Shown here one piece after another: positions 39,076 to 51,472 of a stretch of DNA of 64,000 bases. This DNA is from Prasinococcaceae sp. CCMP 1430. Taxonomy: Eukaryota; Plantae; Prasinodermophyta. Position 1 is the first letter of the stretch. Every line of letters begins with the position of its first letter. The notes under the pieces were generated by a model. The model saw only the letters and a list, made by a program, of their open reading frames with translations, was not told the DNA's origin and ran no database searches. Location of the stretch: assembly GCA_013416795.1 (NCBI GenBank), contig RQSC01001236.1, positions 85,780 through 149,779 on the forward strand. The letters run 5' to 3'. A program made the position numbers and the translations under genes.

Positions 39076-40704
39076 TCACGCGCCTGATGCGTCTTCCGAC
39101 ACGGCTTTCTTGAGCCTGTGGCTTGCCATGATCCAGTCGTCAAGTGCGGCTGCCACCTCGGCTGCGCGCTCGCCGTCGGCGCCGATGGCACCGCGCTTGG
39201 TGAGCGCCATCTTTAGCAGGTACGCTTCGCCCATCAGAGCGCGGAGGGAACTCAGGGCTTGGCCTTGACAACCACCTTTGCCACCGCTGCGGGGAGTCGC
39301 CACTCCGAGCAGCCCGACGGCCTGCATGGGCATGCTTTGCTTGCTCAGGGGCGACGATGCCGCCTCCATCGCGAGCGAGCTCTCGAAGTCGGCGATCATG
39401 GCGCTGTCATATGCTCGCAGCTGCTCCTGAGCCTTTTGCAGCTGACGGCGCAGGTGCGCCACGGCCTTTTCCTCCTTCGCACCGCCTTCGCGAATGTGCG
39501 AGCGCGGGGGTGTCGCGGCGGGGTCTGTATCGCCCATCTCGGCCTCCAACGTCCGCCCGTTTGGCCTCGACGCTCCGAACTCGCCGCCATCGGCGCCAGC
39601 ATTCCAATGAGGCGTCGCTGCCGCGTTGTCATTGGGATCGGCGCCCCCACCAGCCCTGCCGCCGCCGCCCTCGCTTGGGGATTGTCCCGGAAAGGCGCCC
39701 GTACCCTGCGCGCCGCCTGCGTGAGCACTGCCGCCGTACATGAGAGATCCTGGAGCCGGCGAGGACGCGTTCCGTAGCACAGCCTCCGCGGCAGCATGTT
39801 CGAGCATGGCGAGCTGTCCCTCCTTCTCACGCAGCATGATATCCTTGGACGCGAGGCAGGACTGCGCGACAGCAAGCGCCGCCTCGGCCTCGCGCGCCTT
39901 GGCGAGCGCAGCGGTGCCGGCCAACGCGGCTTCGCGCACTTCGGCGAGCTCGCGGTCGCGCTGCGCAAGCGCACCCTGCATGCGAACTGCATATGCTTGC
40001 ACCGAGGCAAGCTCCTCCGCGTAGGCCGCCTGCGCAGACGCAGCCATCGCAATGGTAGCGGCGTCGGCAGCGCCACCAAGGGTGGGAGCAGCGCCATACG
40101 TCGCTCCCATACCGAGGCCCGTTTGTGCATCGTAGGGCGACGGCTGGGGGATCATGCCATCAGCAGGCGTCCCCGCGGTGAATGCTGCGCCCAGGATGCC
40201 ACCCACCGGAGCAACGGCGCTTGGTAGCGGCGGTGACACGCCGTACGGCGTCGGTTGTGCCATCTGCGTAGAGGGAGCTGCATTGGCCGCCTCGCATCTA
40301 AGCTGTTGTTGCTGCTGCTGCAGCAGCATTTGCAGCGCCTGCTGCTGCTGCGGCTGCATTGGCACTGCGTGAGTTTGAGGCGGCGGAGTGGGTGCTGTGA
40401 CCGCCGCTGGTCCCTGAGGTGGCGGAGACTCAGGCGGGAGCTCGTACGCTGGCGCAGGGCGTGCTGGCGCTGAAGCGGGCTCGTCCTCCTCCTCCTCGGC
40501 GTCATCGGCATCGTCTGCGAGCATACCAAGTGCCTTACGCGTTTCGGCGGCCATCGCCGTGTGTTTATCCAGCCTCTTGCGCGGCACTGCTTTGGCGTCG
40601 GCGGCGCTGGCAGCAGCCGCCGGACAAGGAGCCGAGCACACGCGCTGCTGCGCTGCGCTCGGGTAGTTGCGCCCGCGCGCCCAGGTGCGCACCCGGTCGC
40701 CCAT
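39076..40704 (-). CDS. Unknown P/Q/A-rich protein with coiled-coil segments; start uncertain
   Basis: Long open frame with poly-Q and heptad-like ELASVQAYAVRMQGALAQRDRELAE; no family motif recognised. Confidence 0.6.
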   Translation of the reverse strand: MGDRVRTWARGRNYPSAAQQRVCSAPCPAAAASAADAKAVPRKRLDKHTAMAAETRKALGMLADDADDAEEEEDEPASAPARPAPAYELPPESPPPQGPAAVTAPTPPPQTHAVPMQPQQQQALQMLLQQQQQQLRCEAANAAPSTQMAQPTPYGVSPPLPSAVAPVGGILGAAFTAGTPADGMIPQPSPYDAQTGLGMGATYGAAPTLGGAADAATIAMAASAQAAYAEELASVQAYAVRMQGALAQRDRELAEVREAALAGTAALAKAREAEAALAVAQSCLASKDIMLREKEGQLAMLEHAAAEAVLRNASSPAPGSLMYGGSAHAGGAQGTGAFPGQSPSEGGGGRAGGGADPNDNAAATPHWNAGADGGEFGASRPNGRTLEAEMGDTDPAATPPRSHIREGGAKEEKAVAHLRRQLQKAQEQLRAYDSAMIADFESSLAMEAASSPLSKQSMPMQAVGLLGVATPRSGGKGGCQGQALSSLRALMGEAYLLKMALTKRGAIGADGERAAEVAAALDDWIMASHRLKKAVSEDASGA

Positions 40705-41149
40705 CCCCCCGCTCACGCCGCGTGGGGAACGGCGGCCCGGCGTGCATGTACGTGTAAGGGTTCGCTCATCCGACCCTAACTTCGTTCCCCGCGCGCCCAG
40801 CCAGCCCATTCCCCAGGCGTTGCAGCGCGCATTCGAACCCTGATTTTTGGACCTGCTTTGGGACGCGCCCGCCCGCGCGTGGGCGCAAAGTGCGAGATTT
40901 AGATTTAGATTTCGATGAGAAAAACCATGCTCGCGCGACAGAGGGGGGGGGGAAGGGGGGTTGCCTGCGCCGCATGCGACTGCATCGATCGGCGCTGCCG
41001 CGTGCGCGCGGGCGGTGCCGGCTGCTGCGCGCTGGCGAGTGCGGACGCGTGTGTCCGCGGCATGGCGCACATGTGGGGCTTATATGTGGTCGCGTCGCAC
41101 TCGCATCTCGCTGACACCCGCGCGTCGCCGCCGCGGGCCGGCGGGCCCC

Positions 41150-42544
41150 ATGGAATCTGCCGCGCTCTGCCGCGGCAAGTCGCGCTTCTTCTCGCGCGAA
41201 TATCTCGAAAAAACGGACGCACAGTGCAAGGAGTCCATCGAAGCAAAGACTGTCCGCGTCGGCAAGGTCGTCGAGAATGTCGAGGCGGGATTCACCTCAA
41301 CGCAGTGGTTCCACCCGCAGTGTGTGACCAGCCGTGGCCCCGTGGTGGCCGAGGAGATCGATGGCTACGACGAGCTGCCCGCACACGAGCAGGCAGTGCT
41401 TGTTGACGCGATTGCGAACAGGAAGCGCAAGGTCGCAAAGTCTGAGGGCGCCGCCAGTCCCACTTCGCCCAAAAAGAAGATCAAGAAGGCATCGAAGGAT
41501 GCTCCGTCGGGCGACGGCACGCCCGCGTACCCCACGTATGTGCATGGCCTCGACATGGAGGAGGCGTACAAGAAATACAACATCATGCGCGCGCCCGAAC
41601 TCAAGGATGTATTGAGAACCAACAAGCAATTGCTTGGGGGTGTCAAGGCAGAGCTAGTGGCGCGCTGCGTGGACGGCGAGGTATTTGGCGCGCTGCCCAT
41701 TTGTCCTGCGTGTGGAAAGGGCAGACTTCGCGTCAAGTACGTGAAGGTGACTGGGCACAACGGCCAGGGCGAATTCAGCTGCCCGGGATGGTTCGATTCC
41801 GAGATCGGTTCGCGCGTGTCGTGCGGGTTCACCAGCTCCAAGGTTGAGCGCCCCGCGTGGAGGCAGCCCGGCGACCTCGAACCCGACGACGGCGCCGAGG
41901 CTGCCAAGGCTGCCGGCGGAGATTGGACGAAGGCATTCGACGACATCTCGCCGACGGACAAGAAAGGTGCAGCCCAGGCCCTGCTCGCGCGCGCGCGGGA
42001 GCTCAGGCTTAGTGTCAGCAAGGACGAGCACAAAGGGTTGGTTGATTGCGTGCAGCGGCTGGTAGCAACGCGCGACTCCTCTGAGGCGCCCTGGAAGCCT
42101 GCAGAGGCGCTAGTCGCGCTGCAGAAGGAATTCCCGCCGATCGCACCGCTTTCGGTGGACGACCCCGACGACGGCGAGGAAAAGGGCCCCAACGAAGACA
42201 TCGCGCGCATCTTTGATGAGCTCGCCCACTGGATTGGGATCCTCAAGCCTGAAAACTACGGGTTCAAGGTGCGCCTGAGTCTGTGACTCCGCGCTTGCCC
42301 TGATCTTACCCCTGCATTCGCTTGGTGCTGACCCAGCCGGCGTTCTGTACAGCTCGGCGCGTACAAGAAAGTCGCCACCGCCCTGCGGACGAAGTATGCG
42401 ACTGAGCGCGTCGCTAGCGGCAAGGCACTCGCGAAGGAGAAGAACAACGGCATTGGAAAGGCGTCTGGCGAAAAGATCGATGAGTTCTTGTCAACTGGCC
42501 AGGTTGCCGCTCTCGAAACGATGAAGGCGGAGGCTCAGGGGTAG
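41150..42544 (+). CDS. PARP-type zinc finger + PADR1 zinc domain + DNA polymerase-beta-type 8-kDa HhH (dRP-lyase-like) domain; intron 42269-42352
   Basis: C..C.ESIEAKTVRVGK...WFHPQC; ELKDVLRTNKQ..G...LVARCVDG..FGALPICPAC...CPGW...C; NEDIARIFDELA...FK|LGAYKKVA...SG...GIG...EKIDEFLSTG. Confidence 0.8.
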
Positions 42545-42744
42545 AAGGAGCCGGTCCGCCTAAAGATGTCCTCTCAACCCCCGCGCACCCCCCGCCACCA
42601 TCGCCTGCGATGCGGATGTACGGCGCGCTCTGTAAATATGTGAATTGACATACAGTACCTTACTTGATTACACCGCATGAATTTCGTGCGTCTCGCGTCC
42701 ATGTTGCTGCCGACGCGATTGCTCGACGACGAGATACTCAATCC

Positions 42745-45700
42745 TCACAAGGCCCAAAGCGCGGTCGCCGCGAGGGCTGCGATTGGCGCGACACCGCCCT
42801 TGACTCGCCACATAGCGTATAGCGCGGCGAAGGGCAGCGCGGCGCCCAACAAGGGGTCTTTGCGACCGCCGTCGCCCTCATTCTGGGCGTCCACCTCAGC
42901 CTCGGGCTTCCCAAGAGGCGTCGGCGCGTCCTGTGAGAGTTCGGCAATCGGCGGCGATGGAGGCAGCGTCAAGCAGCTTGGCACGGGCGAAGAGCCGAGA
43001 TCGCTCGTGCTGTCGGCAACTGAGAGGCCTGGGGAAGTGTTGGGGCATGGCGTGAGTGCCAGACGCGCATCCCCGAGGCGAGCTGCCGCACGCGCAAGGC
43101 GAGACGGCGTTGTTCCGGCCGCGCCTGCCTTTTGCAGCGCGATTGACTCAGGCGTCGCCGGATCTGCCAATCCGACGCCACTCAAGACGACGTTGCCGTT
43201 GATGCCACCCAGTGGAGTGCGGCGCAGTCCAGTGCGTGGCGTGCGTTTGTTGGGAAGGAGTGCCGGCGAAAGCGCGTTTTCCTTGTCTTCGAATCCCTTC
43301 CGACCACCACTGCTCGCACAACCTTGCGCGGCGGGCAACTGCGAGTCGGTCGCCGCTGCCACCGCGATGGCGGCGAGATCATCACGCAGGCGCATCGCCT
43401 CGGCGTCTACCTTGCGCAGATATGATCGCCCAGCACCCAGCATGGTTGAATGTGGCGAGGACACGACCATGGCGAGCGCACGCTTGGCATCACTTTCGAC
43501 GTCTGCAAGCGCCTGCGCAGCCTCCTTCATGTGTATGCCATCGGCAATGCTCTCGCTCTGAAGCCTGCTGCACTCCGTCTCCGCCAGAGAGGCCCGGCGT
43601 TCCGCGGCGACGCGACCCTCCACCTGCTTCTCGGCGTCGCTTTGGACAGCTGCAAGCTTCGCCTCCAGATTGAGCACGGCCTGCTTGTACTCGGCGGCGC
43701 GCGCGTCGGCAGCATTGGCCCGCTCCCTCAAAATAGACATGTCGGCCTTGCGCTTCTTGGCCGACTGCTGCGCACGCGCGAGGCTCGCTTGTGTGACCTG
43801 AAGCTGGGACGTTGCTTGTGCCGCAGCTCGCTGTGCAACAGCGACAGCATCAATTGTATCCGCGACGTCCTGCTCGGCCTTGGTCGCTCGCGCGTTGGCC
43901 GAAGTTAGAGCCATGCGCGCTTCCTCTGCGGCACGGAAAGCAGCACGCTCAGCGTCGACGAAAGCGATGTCCTTGTCGACCACTTCCTGGCGTGCGGCAT
44001 CCAACTCCGTGCGAAGCCTGCGCGCCTCCTGAGTCGCCTTCGCGATGTCGGCGGCCGCCTTGTGTTGGGCATGCTCGAGCGCCTCGAGCGCATCGCGCGC
44101 CTCCTCAACAGCTTCGTCGCGTTCAGTCTGCAGGCGCGCACATTCGTTGCGAGCCTCAAAAAGATCAATCTCGCCTTCAGCCGATGTTTCGCGAGCCTCG
44201 GCGAGGCGGCGAGGTGCTTCGTCGATGACAGAGTTCGCGAGTTCCAACATGGAGCCAGATCCAGACATCTCGACATTCGTGAAGGAATCAATGATGGTGT
44301 TGATCGCATCGACGTTGGCGATGACGTCCCTCTGCGAGCCCGTCGCAGTCATCATAGCGGCCTTGTGGGCGTGCCCTCCCGTAGTATCTTCCCTTCTCTG
44401 CAGCCTTGCGCCATCAGCCTCAGACAGGGCGAGCTGGCCGACCTTGTAGATATCCCGCGTCTCACTGGCACCGGCATCTAGCTTTTGGTGCAGCGATGCG
44501 ATCTCGGCGGCATGCATGCGCTGCAGCGATGCGATCTTGTTCTGCTGCAACGCAACCTCGTCCGTCAGTCGGCAAGCTTCTTCCTTGCTTGTGGCGATGC
44601 GTGCCTCCGCAGAGGCTGCGCGCTCGTGCAGAGCAGCTACGTGCGCGACGGCCACGTCGCGCACCGCCCTGGCCTCGGCGAGCTCCGCTTCGCATGCTTT
44701 CTCTCGCTCGGCGAGAATCCTGCTCTCCTCGAGGGCAGCCCTCAGAAGCTGTTCGGCAACGTGCGCGCGCTCTTCCGCAGCACACGACGCTGCCTTCGCA
44801 GACTTTGCATCATCTTCCGCCTGACGTCGCGCGACCACGGCTTCGTTGAGCTTTTGTTGCATGTGCGCCTTCTCTGCGCCCTTCAAAGACCTGAGCGAAG
44901 CCATCATACGCGTTGCCTCCTCGAGCTCCTTGGCGAGCCGTTTGACCTCGGTGTCGCTCCTCGCCACCGCCTGTTCGGCGGACGCAGCGCGCGCAAATGC
45001 AGCGAGCGCTCTCTCCTTTGATCGGGCGGCTTCGGCGGCAACGTCGCTCATGGATCGCTTGCTCGCGTTGACTGCGGCAGCGGCACTTTCACCAGCGATG
45101 CGCAGCTCTTCGAGCTCCCTCTGTGCGTGTGCGAGTGCCTTGGTGGTGGCTGCGACTTCGCCGCGCGCCGCCTCGAGCTCGTCCTTAGTCTTCATCGTTT
45201 CCGCCTCGAGCTGAGAGGCCCTCTCCTCGGCTGCCGTGACGGCCCGCGTGTGCTCTTCAGCTAGTTGATCCGCCCTCCGCTTGGCTTCTCCCTGGTACTG
45301 CGTGGCGGCGTCCCTCGCCGCTTTGAGCTCGGCACTGGCCTTTGAAGCAGCCGCCGCCGATCGGCGGGCATGAGCACGGGCATCCTCTGCTGCGGCTTGC
45401 GCCTCCAGAAGTCTCTGCTCAGCGGCATCCCTCGCAATGTCGGCCTGCTCCTTGCCGTACCTGATGGTGGCGGCCTCGGCGCGAGCCTGCTTCGCGTCTT
45501 CCACCGCAGCTGTGTAGGCAGCTTTCAGACCCTTGACAGTCGCCATCAATTGAGAGACCTCAGTTTCGGCGGCCTGTACATTTGCGGCAAGCCGATGCTC
45601 GCGCTCTTCAGCGGCGGCGACAGCAGCATACGCCCCCGCAAGAGCGCTCTTATGCTCTTCCGCTGCGGCAAAGGCACCCCGCAAGGCCTTTTCGGCCAGC

Positions 45701-48700
45701 GCACGCGCCTTTGCGGCATCGCCCTCAGCGCGCGTTGCTCTTTCCTCAGCGACAGCAAGCCTCTCGTCTTGAGCGCTGCGCTCGCTGAGTTGAGCCCGAA
45801 TCTCGTCAATTTCAGCCTGCTTCTCCTCCAGAGCAGCTGCGGCTTCCAAGGCCTGCGTCTCCGCCAACTTGGACGCCACTTCTGCCTCGCGCCTTGCGCC
45901 ATCTGCCGCAGCCAACGCAGCATCCCTCTCCTCGCGCGTGGCCTGGAGGGAGCGCAGAGCATCTTCAGCAAGGGCCTTCAACTTCTTCACTTCGGCACGA
46001 GCAGCGGCGGCGCGCTCATCCGCGGCTTGGCACGTCGCATCCGCGGCCGCGCGCACACACTCAAGTTCCTTGCGGCGACTGTTTGAGTGGCGTGCTGCAA
46101 CGCCAACCTGATGCATTGCTTGCACCGTATTGGCCTCAGCCGCATCGACGCGCGCATTGGCGCGCTGCACGGCAGCTGCAGCTTCTAGCCTTGCCTGGTC
46201 AAGCAGCGACCTCACGTCGGCAGCCTCAGCACGGGCAAGCTCAGCAGCCTCTCTCGCCTCAGCAGCAGCGCGCTCGGAGGATGCTGTAGCTGCCTTTGCA
46301 GACTGGACATCATCTTGGAGGGTGGCAATGGTGGTCTCGTAGTGCGCCTTCTGAATAGAGCACCGTTCGTTTGCCTCCACAAGCTCAGCGCGCAGGCTCA
46401 GAACCTCAGCAGCAGACACAGCGACAGTCTCCTCCATGGACGCAATTGCTTCCGCAGATTCAGCACGGAGAATGTTGGCGGCCAACTGCGACGCCTGGAG
46501 CTCGCGCTGACACGCCTCGTACGACTCGCGCACGGTGCGCGCTTCCGCGGCGGCGCGTCCGGCATCCGCCACGGCGCGCGCCACGGCGGCGTCCGCGTCG
46601 GCTATGGCTCGTGAGTTGCGCTGCTCACACTCGTGCGCCTTGCGAATCGCGCTCTCGGCCAGCTGGCGGAGCTTGGCGCTGTTGCCGTCGGCGCGGTCGG
46701 CGTCCAGCTCGGCCTGAACGGCAGCGGCGCGTAGAGCCTCCGCCTCCGCCTCCGCCGCGGCCTTTGAAGCCTCAAGGTCGTCAACGCGGGCATTCGCATC
46801 CGACAGAGCAGAGCTCAGCAAGCTCTGCGCGGCGATCATTTCCTGCTCTAGCTTCGCCGCGCCGTCGCGCGCATCCGCGCTGTCGCGCTCGAGCGACGCG
46901 CAGCGCGCCAGGAGGCTCTTCACGGACTGCTCAGCACTCGCCAGCTCGCGACGGCTCGCGGCGCGCTGCGTCGACGCGGCGCGTTGGGCGGTGGCGACCG
47001 CGGCGTTCGCCTCCGCAGACTCCTGCTCCGCCCGTACGGCCCGGCGAGTTGCGGCCTCGGCTGCCTCGGCCGACTCCTTGTACCGTTGCTCGTGCTTCCG
47101 CTCAGCAGCCTGGGACTCCTTGACGGCGGCTTCAGCGGCTGCACGAGCGCTCACGGCCTGCGCTTCGGCATCCTCCGCCTTCCTGCGGGCCTGCATGGCA
47201 TCGGATTCGGCATTAGAAAGGAGCTGTTTCTGTTGCTGCATGGTCACGTGGCCATCCCGAAGCACCTTCTCGGCAAGCGCTCTCGCTGAAGCGGCGGCCT
47301 TCTCAGCAGCACAGCGAGCGGTCTCAGATTCAGCGAGAGCTGCCTGAGCTTGTGACATCGCAAGCTCGTGGGCTTCTGCTGCCTCCTGTCCATCTGCCCT
47401 TGCTTGATCGGCATCAGCCCGAGCCCGAGCGACTTCGCGTTCAAGCGCTGAGAGTCGGTCCTTCTGTTCGGCAACAGTCGTCTCAGCAGCAGTACATTGG
47501 ATCTGCAATTCTTTTCTGGATTTGTCAGCCTCGCGCGCGGCTTTTCGCGCTTCACTCGCAATCTCCTCGGCGCGTGCGACAGCTTCGACAGTCTTGCGCT
47601 CCGCTGCCGCCGCATGCTCCTCCGCAATTTTAACGGCTTTTTCGAGGCTGACCTTGAGCTCATCGTTGCGGCGCTGGATCGCCATGGCACGCTCGTCCGC
47701 AGCTGTCACGTCGGCCTTGGCCTCGGCAGCGCTTCTTTCGGCGGCTTCAACCTTCGCCGCCATAGCGGCGAGGGCCTGGTCGCGCTCGGCGATGGAGCGC
47801 GAAGCACCGATGCGAGCATTCTGGAGTTCGCTCAGTGCAGATGCTGCTGCTGCCTCAGCCTCCTTTGCCCTGGCTTCGTGCCCAGCGGCAAGCTCTTGCG
47901 CAGCGGCCACGGCGCGTTGGCCGTCATCTTTCGCACGAGCAAGCTCGCGCTCAGCTTCCTGCAAGTCTGCCTGTGAGGACGCCAGGGCCTCCTCCGATGC
48001 GGCAACTCGCTCTTCCGCTGTTTTAACGCTCTCCATTGCTCCTGCAGTGGCCATCTCGGCAGCCTCGGCACGCTTCACGGCAGCATTTGCAGCCTCCATA
48101 GCCGCCTGCTTTGCTTCGCGATGAGCCTCAGCTGATCGCATCGACTCCTGTCGAGCTGCTTCAGCGGCGCTGGCACGAGCTTCCGCTTCGGCGCGTGCCG
48201 CCTTAAGCTCGTCATGCAGTGCTGCAGCGCGTCGCAACGACTTCTCGGCCGCGACCTTCACGTCAGCAAGGGCTTTCTCCGCTTCGGCAGCGCGGGCATT
48301 TGCAGCATCTGTCTCTGCCTGGGAAGCGGCACGCGATACCGCGTGATCCTCAGCCAATTTGGAGGCTGCAGCATGGGCTTGCTCAACCTGTGCCCTCGCT
48401 GCGCGCAACTCCTCTGACGCTTCCGTCTCCTTTGAGAAAGCAGTGCGGCGAACAGCAGCTAGTCCCTCCGCGGCTTCTTCGTGAGCATCACGGGCTTCAG
48501 CAAGATCGTGCGATAGCTGCGCAATTCGCAAGTCGGAAGCAGACTTTGCCTCGACGGCATCCCTCAAAGAGGTCTGGATCTCTTCCTTCTCGGCTTGCGC
48601 GGCGGCAAGGTCTTGCTTGGCGCGAGCCTCGGCAAGGGCGGCCTCCTGTTTGGTCCGCTCGACTGCCTCGATTGCTTGCTTTTCCCTGCATTCGGCCATC

Positions 48701-51168
48701 TCAGCGGCAGAGCGTGCATTGTTGAGCTCCGCCTGAAGACCCATCGAATGGCGCGCCGCCGCTGCGAGCGCCTCCTTGGCCTCGGCGGCGGCCTCCTCGT
48801 GAGTCGCTTTCGCGATTTTTGCACTGCGGACGGCAGCTGCGGCCTCAGAGCGAGCAGTGATGACTGCGGCCTCAGCCTGGCGCGTTTTTTCGTCGGCATG
48901 TTGTGCAAGCTCAATCGCAGCCTCCCTCGCTTGACGCAGCTCCCTTGCTTCTTCCTCTGCAGCATCGGCGCGCTCTTTTGCGTCCTCCGTGGACTTGACA
49001 GCCTCCTCAATAGCGAGCGCGTGCTTCTTGCGCTCCTCCCCGGCCTCGCGCAGCGTCGCTTCGGCCAGACTGCGCGCCTTCGTAGCATCAGATTCTGCTG
49101 CATCAGCGCGGTGGACAGCCGCAGACCGTGCCTTCTGCTCGTGGGCAGCCGTGTCAAGGGCATCCTTTGCCTCTGCACGCGCCTGGTCTGCCTCTGCCTG
49201 CGCAGCCTGGAGCTTGTCCATCGCACCCGCCGCCTGCGCGAGCGCGTCATCGGCAGTAGCCTGTGCCTGCAATGCCTGCGCCTCGAGCCTTGCACAGCGT
49301 TCTTCTGACTCGCGCGTTGACTCCTCTGCTTCGTGACGCGCCTCCTCAAGTCGCCTTTCCGCGTCCTCGGCGGCGCCTGCAGCATCCTCGGCAGCTTTTT
49401 CTGCCTCGATGAGCCGCTTCTGTGCCGACTCAGCGGCGGTCTGGGCCTCCTTGAGCGCCGCCGCAGTTGCTGCGGCGCCCTTCTCGAGCTCTGCAACGCG
49501 AGCGGCCTGCTCGGTGAGAGATGCTGCGTTGCCCGCCCGGGCCACGCGCAGCTGCTCGAGCTCCTGCTCTTGGGCCATCACCCGAGCCTGGCCCGCATCC
49601 ACCTCCGCCTGCGCCAAGTTGCGAGCGTTGACGGCGCGCCTGGCCGCGTCCTCAGCCGCAGCGGCGCGCTCTGATGCCCTCGTTGCTTCCTTGGAGGCCA
49701 CAGCGAGCTTGCTCTCGAGCTCGACGATCTCGGCGTCACGAGATACAAGGCGTGCTTCAGCAGCTGATGCCCTAGCCTCCGCTGCCTCCTCGCGAGCGAT
49801 GGCGGCCGCGAGGCTGGCCTCCGCAGCAGCGGCACGCTTGTTCGCCTCATCAGCCTCGGCGGCGGCGGCACGCGCCTCCGCGGCGATGCGCTCGGCTGTA
49901 GACTTGTGGCTTTCCTCGCGGACCTCGGCTTCCTTCATGACCACGATGGCGTCCTCGAGCTGGCGCGCGCATTCAAGGGCCTTGGTCTCCGCTTCGTTAG
50001 CACGGGCCTTCTCCCTCGACACCGTCGCCATGGCGTCGGCCTTGCTGGCAACTTCAATTTCCGCTGCCTTCTCCTCGGCGCGCTGAGTGCGCTCCTGTGC
50101 CACCTGCAAGCTGCGAGTAGCGTTCCCGAGCGCGCGCTCCGCGGCCTCCTGCGCCTTGCGGGCCGCTTTGAGGCCGTCGGCGGCCTCGTTCGCGGCGAGG
50201 TGTGCCTCGTGTGCGCGCGCCTCCGCCGCGGAGCGCGCCTCCTCCGCCTGGGCGGCGCTCTCTTTGAGTGGGGCTATGGCCTCCTCGTGATGGCGACGCG
50301 CCCGTTTGAGCTCGAGCACCTCCCTTTGCGCATCCTCGAGGGCGGCCATCGACGCCTCGCAATTCTCCTTGAGGGCGCGGGCCTCCTCGCGCGCGATTTG
50401 GGCCTCACGGGTGGCCTTCTGCGCCTTGGCTTCGCCCGCGTCGGCCTCTCGTCTAGCCTTCTTCGCCTCCTCGATTGCAGCGGTCTTGCTCGCCTCGAGC
50501 TCGCGGCGCATCGTCTCTGCTTTGCCGAGGGCCTTGTCGGCGCCAGCGAGGGCGCGATGTACCTCCTCGACATCCTCATCGGCCATCGCTTGCGCCTCCT
50601 CCGCCATAGCTCTGGCAGCCCGCACCTCGGCCTTGAGGGAGCTCACCTCACGCTCGGCGCGCTCAGCGCGCGCACGCAAGAGCTCCGAGTCGGCGAGCGC
50701 CGCCGCCGCCGCGGCCTCGGCCTCGTCGGCGATATCGTGCGCCTCTTGAAGCTCCTCTGCGCGGGATGCCATCGCCGCGTCGAGCCTCGCACGCGCCTCA
50801 TTCAGCTCGCGCTCGGTCGCGGCCTTGTCCTGCACCTCGTCGCGCAGCGCATCGCGCTCGCGCTGCGCCCGATGCAGCAGAGCGCGATACTCCGGCCCGT
50901 CCAAGGCGCCGAGCGCGCCCGTCGAGGCGGCAATGGAGCCGCGCCCGCGCCGCCTGCCGGTGGCCGATCCCACCACCATCTTGAAGAAGCTCTTCACCGG
51001 CGTCGGCTTTGCATCCCCCACTGCCGACGCACCGACGCTCGGCGAGCCACCATTCCCTTCGGCGGGCGCGGGCGCGGCGTTCTCCTTGCCGTCCGCCGGC
51101 GCCGCGGGCTCGCCGTCCGCGTTGGCCGCGTCCAGGCTCGCGAGCAGCAGCGGGTCGCAAAAGTCCAT
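42745..51168 (-). CDS. Giant (2,807 aa) Ala/Glu-rich coiled-coil protein with a hydrophobic C-terminus, intronless
   Basis: Single 8.4-kb open frame from MDFCDPLL (ATG 51168), continuous heptad-like sequence, C-terminal LLGAALPFAALYAMW..VAPIAALAATALWAL. Confidence 0.8.
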   Translation of the reverse strand: MDFCDPLLLASLDAANADGEPAAPADGKENAAPAPAEGNGGSPSVGASAVGDAKPTPVKSFFKMVVGSATGRRRGRGSIAASTGALGALDGPEYRALLHRAQRERDALRDEVQDKAATERELNEARARLDAAMASRAEELQEAHDIADEAEAAAAAALADSELLRARAERAEREVSSLKAEVRAARAMAEEAQAMADEDVEEVHRALAGADKALGKAETMRRELEASKTAAIEEAKKARREADAGEAKAQKATREAQIAREEARALKENCEASMAALEDAQREVLELKRARRHHEEAIAPLKESAAQAEEARSAAEARAHEAHLAANEAADGLKAARKAQEAAERALGNATRSLQVAQERTQRAEEKAAEIEVASKADAMATVSREKARANEAETKALECARQLEDAIVVMKEAEVREESHKSTAERIAAEARAAAAEADEANKRAAAAEASLAAAIAREEAAEARASAAEARLVSRDAEIVELESKLAVASKEATRASERAAAAEDAARRAVNARNLAQAEVDAGQARVMAQEQELEQLRVARAGNAASLTEQAARVAELEKGAAATAAALKEAQTAAESAQKRLIEAEKAAEDAAGAAEDAERRLEEARHEAEESTRESEERCARLEAQALQAQATADDALAQAAGAMDKLQAAQAEADQARAEAKDALDTAAHEQKARSAAVHRADAAESDATKARSLAEATLREAGEERKKHALAIEEAVKSTEDAKERADAAEEEARELRQAREAAIELAQHADEKTRQAEAAVITARSEAAAAVRSAKIAKATHEEAAAEAKEALAAAARHSMGLQAELNNARSAAEMAECREKQAIEAVERTKQEAALAEARAKQDLAAAQAEKEEIQTSLRDAVEAKSASDLRIAQLSHDLAEARDAHEEAAEGLAAVRRTAFSKETEASEELRAARAQVEQAHAAASKLAEDHAVSRAASQAETDAANARAAEAEKALADVKVAAEKSLRRAAALHDELKAARAEAEARASAAEAARQESMRSAEAHREAKQAAMEAANAAVKRAEAAEMATAGAMESVKTAEERVAASEEALASSQADLQEAERELARAKDDGQRAVAAAQELAAGHEARAKEAEAAAASALSELQNARIGASRSIAERDQALAAMAAKVEAAERSAAEAKADVTAADERAMAIQRRNDELKVSLEKAVKIAEEHAAAAERKTVEAVARAEEIASEARKAAREADKSRKELQIQCTAAETTVAEQKDRLSALEREVARARADADQARADGQEAAEAHELAMSQAQAALAESETARCAAEKAAASARALAEKVLRDGHVTMQQQKQLLSNAESDAMQARRKAEDAEAQAVSARAAAEAAVKESQAAERKHEQRYKESAEAAEAATRRAVRAEQESAEANAAVATAQRAASTQRAASRRELASAEQSVKSLLARCASLERDSADARDGAAKLEQEMIAAQSLLSSALSDANARVDDLEASKAAAEAEAEALRAAAVQAELDADRADGNSAKLRQLAESAIRKAHECEQRNSRAIADADAAVARAVADAGRAAAEARTVRESYEACQRELQASQLAANILRAESAEAIASMEETVAVSAAEVLSLRAELVEANERCSIQKAHYETTIATLQDDVQSAKAATASSERAAAEAREAAELARAEAADVRSLLDQARLEAAAAVQRANARVDAAEANTVQAMHQVGVAARHSNSRRKELECVRAAADATCQAADERAAAARAEVKKLKALAEDALRSLQATREERDAALAAADGARREAEVASKLAETQALEAAAALEEKQAEIDEIRAQLSERSAQDERLAVAEERATRAEGDAAKARALAEKALRGAFAAAEEHKSALAGAYAAVAAAEEREHRLAANVQAAETEVSQLMATVKGLKAAYTAAVEDAKQARAEAATIRYGKEQADIARDAAEQRLLEAQAAAEDARAHARRSAAAASKASAELKAARDAATQYQGEAKRRADQLAEEHTRAVTAAEERASQLEAETMKTKDELEAARGEVAATTKALAHAQRELEELRIAGESAAAAVNASKRSMSDVAAEAARSKERALAAFARAASAEQAVARSDTEVKRLAKELEEATRMMASLRSLKGAEKAHMQQKLNEAVVARRQAEDDAKSAKAASCAAEERAHVAEQLLRAALEESRILAEREKACEAELAEARAVRDVAVAHVAALHERAASAEARIATSKEEACRLTDEVALQQNKIASLQRMHAAEIASLHQKLDAGASETRDIYKVGQLALSEADGARLQRREDTTGGHAHKAAMMTATGSQRDVIANVDAINTIIDSFTNVEMSGSGSMLELANSVIDEAPRRLAEARETSAEGEIDLFEARNECARLQTERDEAVEEARDALEALEHAQHKAAADIAKATQEARRLRTELDAARQEVVDKDIAFVDAERAAFRAAEEARMALTSANARATKAEQDVADTIDAVAVAQRAAAQATSQLQVTQASLARAQQSAKKRKADMSILRERANAADARAAEYKQAVLNLEAKLAAVQSDAEKQVEGRVAAERRASLAETECSRLQSESIADGIHMKEAAQALADVESDAKRALAMVVSSPHSTMLGAGRSYLRKVDAEAMRLRDDLAAIAVAAATDSQLPAAQGCASSGGRKGFEDKENALSPALLPNKRTPRTGLRRTPLGGINGNVVLSGVGLADPATPESIALQKAGAAGTTPSRLARAAARLGDARLALTPCPNTSPGLSVADSTSDLGSSPVPSCLTLPPSPPIAELSQDAPTPLGKPEAEVDAQNEGDGGRKDPLLGAALPFAALYAMWRVKGGVAPIAALAATALWAL

Positions 51169-51472
51169 CGCCGCGGGCACCCCCCTCCCCTCCCCCTCGC
51201 CCGACCAACCCACCGGTCGCGCCCCTCTCTCCGCTCCGCTCCCTCCGCTCCTCTCCTGGGCTCGCGCCCGGCGCCCCGCGCCCCCGCCGTGCGCGCGCAC
51301 GGAAAGGGCGCGCGCGCCTGGCGCCCGTGTGGCACGCCCATTCCTCCCTCCAACCTCGCGCACAGCTTCACGACTCCTCCAGCCAGCCAGCCGAGCACCG
51401 CCGCCAAGGAAAAGCGGGGGAAAAAAAAAAAAAAAAGAACGGTCACGGATGGGTGGATCTTTCAAAGCTCAG

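Follow-up and report, generated by a model that had tools for sequence, protein, structure and literature searches.

The 8-kDa domain of Pol beta (DNA polymerase beta) and the zinc modules of PARP1 are among the best-studied parts used in the recognition of DNA breaks, and both are familiar chiefly as front ends of the enzymes to which they belong. The N-terminal region of PARP1 comprises two PARP-type zinc fingers, a basic linker, SAP-like helices and a CCCC zinc ribbon (Zn3, of the PADR1 type) with an RxxW motif past the last cysteine, and the protein also contains BRCT, WGR, helical and ADP-ribosyl-transferase domains. The 8-kDa domain of Pol beta and Pol lambda, which carries a helix-hairpin-helix (HhH) GIG hairpin and an N-cap asparagine, is followed by the fingers, palm and thumb of the polymerase. 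The PARP-type finger also serves as a portable break-targeting module on single-strand-break repair proteins, as in DNA ligase III alpha and the plant protein ZDP, which possess a clear catalytic domain (ligase and 3'-phosphatase, respectively) and no PADR1.

The window analysed here (64,000 nucleotides of contig RQSC01001236.1, 66% GC, eukaryotic DNA) contains a two-exon gene in which a PARP1-type DNA-break-binding front end is joined to a Pol beta 8-kDa 'lyase' domain, while the core of either enzyme is missing. The domains are arranged in the order PARP-type zinc finger, NLS-like linker, PADR1/Zn3, a helical domain of about 100 amino acids and a C-terminal HHH_8, the Pfam family of the 8-kDa domain. 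The features of the gene are as follows:

41150..42268, + strand: exon 1, codons 1–373, with the ATG at 41150 and, as the last codon, AAG for K373 (the equivalent of Pol beta K35)
41222..41410, + strand: zf-PARP domain with the CxxC knuckle collapsed, residues 25–87 (Pfam)
41420..41494, + strand: basic linker KRK...KKKIKK, residues 91–115, between the finger and Zn3 at the position of the PARP1 NLS
41549..41869, + strand: PADR1 / PARP1-Zn3-like domain, residues 134–240, in which SAP-like helices precede a zinc ribbon and then R234-x-x-W237
41870..42181, + strand: family-specific helical domain and acidic linker, residues 241–344, with no recognisable relatives
42188..42502, + strand: Pol-X 8-kDa (HHH_8) domain, residues 347–423, interrupted by the intron
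42269..42352, + strand: intron of 84 nt, GT..AG, which splits the HHH_8 domain
42353..42544, + strand: exon 2, codons 374–436 and the TAG at 42542–42544
42631–42635, + strand: TGTAA, 87 nt past the stop codon, a putative polyadenylation signal of the green-algal type

The spliced product of 436 amino acids is identical at every residue to the EukProt protein EP00793_Prasinoderma_coloniale_P004580 (PRCOL_00000341-RA; P0008), and the splice that the initial annotation had proposed from the letters of the DNA is therefore that of an annotated gene of the green picoalga Prasinoderma coloniale (Prasinodermophyta), which identifies the organism. Besides the ATG at 41150, another one in the same frame lies at 41084. 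The intron contains a branch-like CTGAC, the reading frame meets a stop in it after five codons, and it is positioned directly after the codon of K373. The closest orthologue, from P. singulare (53–57% identical), is a protein of 429 amino acids known from an MMETSP transcript marked 'type:complete' (UniRef A0A7S3BNK3, 'PARP-type domain-containing protein') and from uninterrupted genomic ORFs on contigs of up to 15 kb. Both the transcript and the genomic ORFs are colinear with the P. coloniale protein through the junction, where ENFVFK/VAALNKAA of P. singulare is aligned with ENYGFK/LGAYKKVA of P. coloniale at equal length (the slash marks the junction), and both have the stop at the equal position. 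Four contigs from other P. coloniale samples (L001–L004), about 99% identical, have the intron with its splice sites and an open frame, and retain K414, the equivalent of Pol beta K72. Retention of the intron in the true product was considered and rejected, as it gives an ORF of 378 amino acids in which most of the 8-kDa domain is lost, while exon 2 alone scores 22.4 bits against HHH_8; the 378-aa read-through ORF, present as P0001 and 12 others, is the output of prokaryote-style gene callers on metagenome contigs.

The gene had also been described as closed on both sides, and the stop codon ending at 42544, the TGTAA starting at 42631, a putative poly(A) signal of the green-algal type, and the end of a convergent ORF of 2906 amino acids at 42745 are all found in the sequence at these coordinates. 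Together with the C-termini of the whole family described below, they led us to reject a transcript that runs on into a catalytic domain. Pfam gives no matches in the two neighbouring ORFs. It is very improbable that the gene is an annotation artefact, be it a piece of some longer gene (PARP or Pol X) or a pseudogene in decay: a finger that lacks one ligand, the C26R substitution in one strain and the marginal single-sequence Pfam scores of HHH_8 and PADR1 would fit such an origin, but the three downstream features lie inside 200 nt, the complete orthologous transcript has the same end point, these limits recur in the 86 family representatives, and in the strain variants, about 99% identical, K414 is present and both the frame and the splice sites are intact.

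A profile search run exhaustively over 1.84 billion cluster representatives returned 184 proteins below 1e-30, and the family set taken from the best 150 of these and the seeds consists of 86 clusters (50% identity) matched without interruption from PADR1 through the whole of HHH_8, so the family has at least 86 clusters. Few additional named members were contributed by a word-indexed profile search. The family proteins are about 280–560 amino acids long, and in nearly all of them the chain stops no more than a few residues past the 8-kDa domain, with about 30–50 extra residues in a few. Pfam matches HHH_8 in 85/86 members, and not one of the 86 is matched by a PARP catalytic or a polymerase family. 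Members are found in green algae (Prasinoderma coloniale, P. singulare and Pyramimonas), in diatoms (Coscinodiscus, Cylindrotheca closterium, Nitzschia sp. and a Bacillariaceae MAG), in the pelagophyte Chrysophaeum taylorii and in the labyrinthulid Mucochytrium quahogii, and one (P0006; CAK9092944.1) is automatically named 'PARP-1' by NCBI. Two clusters without the finger (P0003 and P0049) come from many metagenome assemblies, Tara included, on contigs of up to 250 kb. As judged from this distribution of homologous sequences, the architecture is that of a widespread protist family and not a one-off.

The initial annotation had left it open whether the protein was undescribed. A full-text search, with most subscription journals outside its scope, found no paper on the architecture, but the protein and many of its relatives are already deposited in EukProt, UniProt and NCBI, unnamed or named automatically, and the UniProt label of members is only 'PARP-type domain-containing protein'. 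The parts are all well-known modules; what is new is that they are combined in the absence of both parent enzymes, and how widely this combination occurs in marine protists.

In the spliced protein, Pfam detects no PARP catalytic, WGR, BRCT or polymerase domain, and the palm, fingers and thumb of family X polymerases are absent; the protein ends 13 residues past the 8-kDa domain. The N-terminal 235 residues are colinear with the finger, NLS and Zn3 of PARP1: a phmmer search of PDB sequences hits a PARP1 Zn1-Zn3 fusion at 8e-8 in a single alignment covering the finger, the basic linker and the adjoining part of Zn3, the profile of the 86-member family matches the PARP1 N-terminus at 6e-19, and Foldseek matches an AlphaFold (AF2) model built on the family alignment to PARP1 Zn1/Zn3 chains at 3e-6. 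The mean pLDDT of this model is 83.6, and the arrangement of the domains relative to each other is moderately defined (pTM 0.60). Pfam, phmmer and Foldseek thus all bear out the domain chimera, without a catalytic PARP or polymerase, that had been read from the sequence. Compared with PARP1, the protein has a finger, a basic linker, SAP-like helices, a CCCC ribbon and RxxW past the last cysteine in the same order, whereas the family protein has one finger where PARP1 has two, the finger of P. coloniale has three zinc ligands, and the BRCT, WGR, helical and ADP-ribosyl-transferase domains are lacking, so that signalling by PARylation is impossible.

The finger is the part in which the initial annotation does not hold. 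It had been described as a CCHC finger, but a deletion of three residues leaves only three ligands (C26, encoded at 41225–41227; H55; C58), and the CX2C...HX2C set is incomplete. The domain scores 40.7 bits against zf-PARP (PF00645; cut-off 39.3) over profile positions 12–86 of 87 only. At the knuckle, AQCK---ESI of P. coloniale is aligned with ASCKKCSESI of human PARP1 and SKCKKCKDPI of P. singulare, the three missing residues including one of the cysteines, and this deletion is common to all 13 environmental variants; in one strain (runs SRR29950795–97), C26 is additionally replaced by arginine (C26R, 41225 T>C). The arginine that grips the DNA backbone in this type of finger is conserved (R36). 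The AF2 model is uncertain over residues 1–30, with pLDDT of 50–64. A hidden upstream exon that would restore the CxxC, suggested by the CAG just before the TGC of C26, was rejected, because the exon continues unbroken to the REY strand motif, seven residues upstream; the loss of 9 nt, which encode 'KCK' in P. singulare, accounts for both flanks. With one zinc ligand gone, the P. coloniale finger is probably weakened.

Among the 86 family members, zf-PARP is matched by Pfam in 33 and an intact CX2C...HX2C is present in 21, while several others have K, C or H substitutes at the ligand positions, and many of the sequences are N-terminally incomplete. In the metagenome clusters P0003 and P0049, of 106 and 31 sequences, the finger is absent altogether. 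The pattern of matches indicates that the finger is an accessory part, dispensable or variable across the family. Among described finger-bearing repair proteins, DNA ligase III is matched by its zinc finger (Lig3 ZnF, 1uw0) at E 0.003; unlike ligase III alpha and ZDP, the protein described here has the 8-kDa domain as its sole catalytic candidate.

The basic linker is aligned by phmmer with the KRKGDEVDG...KKKSKK stretch of PARP1 and is disordered in the AF2 model; K109 and K110 are kept in 71/86 and 67/86 members, respectively. It looks like a bipartite NLS, and its location at the position of the PARP1 NLS makes a nuclear protein likely, as we infer from the KRK...KKKIKK motif.

The four cysteines of the PADR1 zinc ribbon (C185, C188, C211 and C225) are kept in 84–86 of the 86 members, and R234 and W237 are found in 83/86 and 77/86, respectively. 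Taken as a single sequence, the P. coloniale domain stays below the Pfam thresholds (PF08063 and PF21728; 12.9 and 16.2 bits, cut-offs 25.1 and 25.7), with SAP/PADR1_N at residues 146–180 and Zn_ribbon_PADR1 at residues 181–234, while the P. singulare orthologue clears the PADR1_N cut-off with 26.1 bits. The family profile matches PARP1 Zn3 (2riq) at E 1e-11, and Foldseek superposes the model on the same structure with a TM score of 0.59 at 2.8 Å over 106 columns. The assignment of a PADR1/Zn3 module, made originally from the sequence, is hence confirmed by the four cysteines, the phmmer match at 8e-8 and the 2riq fold. The following residues, 241–344, form a confident small helical domain in an AF2 sub-model (pLDDT 78.8), which has no match in Pfam or in profile and sequence searches of the PDB; in structure searches, the Foldseek hits have E>3, and the best VIA-align hits, at Z 5.3 to small bundles of the UBA/EF-Ts-like type, are not significant.

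The 8-kDa domain of the spliced protein scores 30.5 bits against HHH_8 (PF14716; cut-off 30), and phmmer matches it to Pol beta at 7e-5, over Pol beta residues 34–89. In this alignment, K373 is equivalent to K35, Y377 (42362–42364) to Y39, K401 to K60 and K414 (42473–42475) to K72, so that the K35, Y39 and K72 equivalents named in the initial annotation are indeed present in the P. coloniale copy. The equivalent of E71 is also present, while that of K68 is alanine (A410), with a lysine one position before (K409). Further key residues are the N-cap asparagine N348, K403 and the hairpin G406-I-G408-K409. Foldseek aligns the AF2 model, which has the five-helix HhH fold, with the 8-kDa domain of Pol beta at 2.1 Å over 82–88 residues (30–34% identity), and the family profile matches Pol beta residues 11–91 at 7e-17 and Pol lambda at 4e-11. 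The domain is thus like that of Pol beta and Pol lambda in its fold, the GIG hairpin, the N-cap asparagine and, in the P. coloniale copy, the K35/Y39/K60/K72 equivalents; it is unlike them in that it is C-terminal, with no fingers, palm or thumb after it, in the alanine at K68 and in a nucleophile lysine that is not general in the family.

One reading of these features is that the protein is a self-contained base-excision-repair (BER) enzyme. Its main task would be 5'-dRP removal or AP-site cleavage by way of a Schiff base formed at K414; the PARP-type modules would direct it to incised sites, and it would act independently of any Pol X. The presence of the K35, Y39, K60, E71 and K72 equivalents together in the P. 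coloniale copy and the greater nearness of the domain to Pol beta than to Pol lambda speak for it, as does the clade with the named diatom sequences, in which 44/54 members have lysine at the K72 position, a frequency that suggests selection there. Against it, the alanine at K68 has to be set, and so does the variability of the nucleophile position in the family as a whole, where lysine occurs in 53/86 members and L, I, V, Y, F, M, H, N, T, D, R, Q or A elsewhere. In the tree half that holds the P. coloniale gene, only 9/32 members have the lysine; P. singulare has isoleucine at K72 and leucine at Y39, and P0006 has aspartate at K72. On a FastTree tree of the columns from PADR1 to the C-terminus of the family members, the state at this position (lysine or not) changes at least 12 times, at least 7 of these changes being forced by well-supported branches. 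Other positions of the pocket vary as well, with K or R at the K35 equivalent in 42/86 and Y or F at the Y39 equivalent in 58/86, and the K35/Y39/K72 pocket is complete in only 13/86 members, that of P. coloniale included. Moreover, 8-kDa domains without lyase activity exist: those of Pol mu and TdT bind a 5'-phosphate and are not lyases, so that neither the domain nor even the lysine proves a lyase function. Overall, we regard the self-contained BER enzyme as rather unlikely.

A catalytic nucleophile is expected to be conserved, and this one is not, which makes it unlikely that lyase activity is the main conserved function of the family. The (near-)invariant positions are instead the four PADR1 cysteines, D175/G176, G180, G213, R234, W237, N348, K403, G408, E417 and G422, which are DNA-binding and structural residues of the PADR1 zinc ribbon and the HhH hairpin, and not the lyase nucleophile. 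The combination of K35, Y39, K60 and K72 equivalents in 13/86 members could nevertheless mark a real lyase in a subset, and the nearly complete pocket makes dRP/AP-lyase activity of the P. coloniale copy in vitro plausible, with chances only slightly short of even. The self-sufficient nick sensor and dRP lyase of the initial annotation is accordingly retained in part: the lysine pocket of this copy is intact, while the loss of a finger ligand, the variable K72 position and the DNA-binding or structural nature of the invariant residues count against it.

On balance, we think it probable, by a modest degree, that the family consists of nuclear readers of nicks and gaps with an invariant core of PADR1, helical domain and Pol-beta-type 8-kDa domain, and in the best reading of the conservation pattern lyase chemistry would be possible without being the conserved function. 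In the proposed mechanism, the downstream strand would be bound at its 5'-phosphate or 5'-dRP by the 8-kDa domain, as in Pol beta, while PADR1, with the PARP finger where it is intact, would grip the duplex on the opposite side of the break. It is thus the 8-kDa domain that would take the 5'-end-reading part that WGR plays in PARP1, a role we infer from the established structures of PARP1 (Zn1-Zn3-WGR on breaks) and of Pol beta. The helical middle domain may be the output surface, for the recruitment of a partner or the protection of the break, and K414 may in addition enable the P. coloniale copy to cleave 5'-dRP or AP sites.

That the domain can serve outside polymerases as a DNA-binding module follows from stand-alone tandem HHH_8 proteins in metagenomes (P0102, P0105 and P0197–P0205), which resemble the present family in having 8-kDa-type domains of very similar sequence without a polymerase, the K72 position being variable there too, and differ from it in having three or four repeats and no PARP-type modules. 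Plants and green algae are without Pol beta and depend on Pol lambda, and the rate of BER can be limited by the step that removes dRP (PMC6728418). The absence of Pol beta gives a rationale for an extra factor that processes or senses 5'-ends, and the same two points count in favour of the self-contained BER enzyme discussed above.

Another reading dispenses with catalysis and takes the protein as a non-catalytic cap or competitor, i.e. a mimic of PARP1 reduced to its DNA-binding domains, which would occupy breaks and modulate the access of PARP1, ligase or polymerase to breaks, much like the DNA-binding fragment of PARP1 generated by caspases. The colinearity of the N-terminal 235 residues with PARP1, the absence of a catalytic domain and the variable lyase lysine are consistent with it, but many members have a degenerate finger or none, this being the module that chiefly binds breaks in PARP1, and the conserved helical middle domain, together with the set of K403, GIG and E417, suggests a specific interaction role and not mere occupancy. 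We consider such a cap distinctly improbable.

A bolder form of the nick/gap reader may also be envisaged, namely a polymerase-independent 'reader-lyase' of single-strand breaks. For many algae and protists of the sea, this dedicated protein would carry out the cleaning of 5'-ends in short-patch BER, its 8-kDa domain standing in for WGR as the 5'-end reader of a PARP1-like assembly, while the lineages that lost the lysine would act as sensor or adaptor only; this version is doubtful, and we hold it to be unlikely. The natural variation of K, I, L and D at the nucleophile position provides ready controls with which DNA binding can be separated from lyase chemistry.

The family is also a warning about automatic names, such as 'PARP-1' for P0006 and 'PolX' for proteins with HHH_8 only. 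Two front ends have been fused here with both enzymes missing, in at least 86 clusters from ecologically dominant marine plankton. Should it prove to bind 5'-phosphorylated nicks or gaps, the protein would be a natural minimal break sensor and a new player in the single-strand-break repair of algae, in which Pol beta is absent.

The gene encoding the P. coloniale PADR1-HHH_8 protein (41150-42544, + strand) is flanked by two minus-strand ORFs:

39076-41070, - strand, ORF of 664 aa, no Pfam match over the portion tested
42745-51465, - strand, convergent single ORF of 2906 aa, rich in Ala, Glu and Arg and coiled-coil-like, no Pfam match

In the strain contigs, the convergent ORF is called as a 2807-aa version. 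An upstream ATG lies in frame with the gene, and the intervening region (41084-41149) would provide an Arg-rich N-terminal extension of 22 residues (MWSRRTRISLTPARRRRGPAGP), which might serve in organelle targeting, for example; the annotated model does not start at 41084, and nor do the genes called in the metagenomes.

The orthologues of P. coloniale and its sister species P. singulare appear to differ in their intron positions, as judged from ORF calls. In the P. singulare orthologue (P0028 together with P0023/P0029, on P. singulare contigs), an intron apparently separates the finger from the linker (between ...ETLK and VTLGKG...), with apparently none in the HHH_8 domain, while P. coloniale has the reverse arrangement, with an intron inside the HHH_8 domain and none between finger and linker.

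Domains highly similar in sequence to the HHH_8 domain of the PADR1-HHH_8 family are also found in metagenome proteins (P0102, P0105, P0115, P0165, P0167, P0170 and P0197-P0205; 236-409 aa, on contigs of up to 299 kb), which consist solely of 2-4 tandem HHH_8 (Pol-X 8-kDa-like) domains. Some of these carry the JGI label 'DNA polymerase/3'-5' exonuclease PolX', the polymerase part being absent, and the residue at the position of the Pol beta Schiff-base lysine (K72) differs from repeat to repeat. Another metagenome protein, P0048 (1376 aa), contains 11 tandem zf-PARP fingers followed by a C-terminal PNK3P 3'-phosphatase fragment, which is the design of plant ZDP taken to an extreme.

In the PARP finger of P. 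coloniale, a strain variant (T>C at 41225, codon 26) carried by contigs L002-L004 (SRR29950795-97) results in the substitution C26R, which removes a further zinc ligand from a finger already reduced to three ligands, suggesting that selection on zinc binding by this finger is now lost in P. coloniale.
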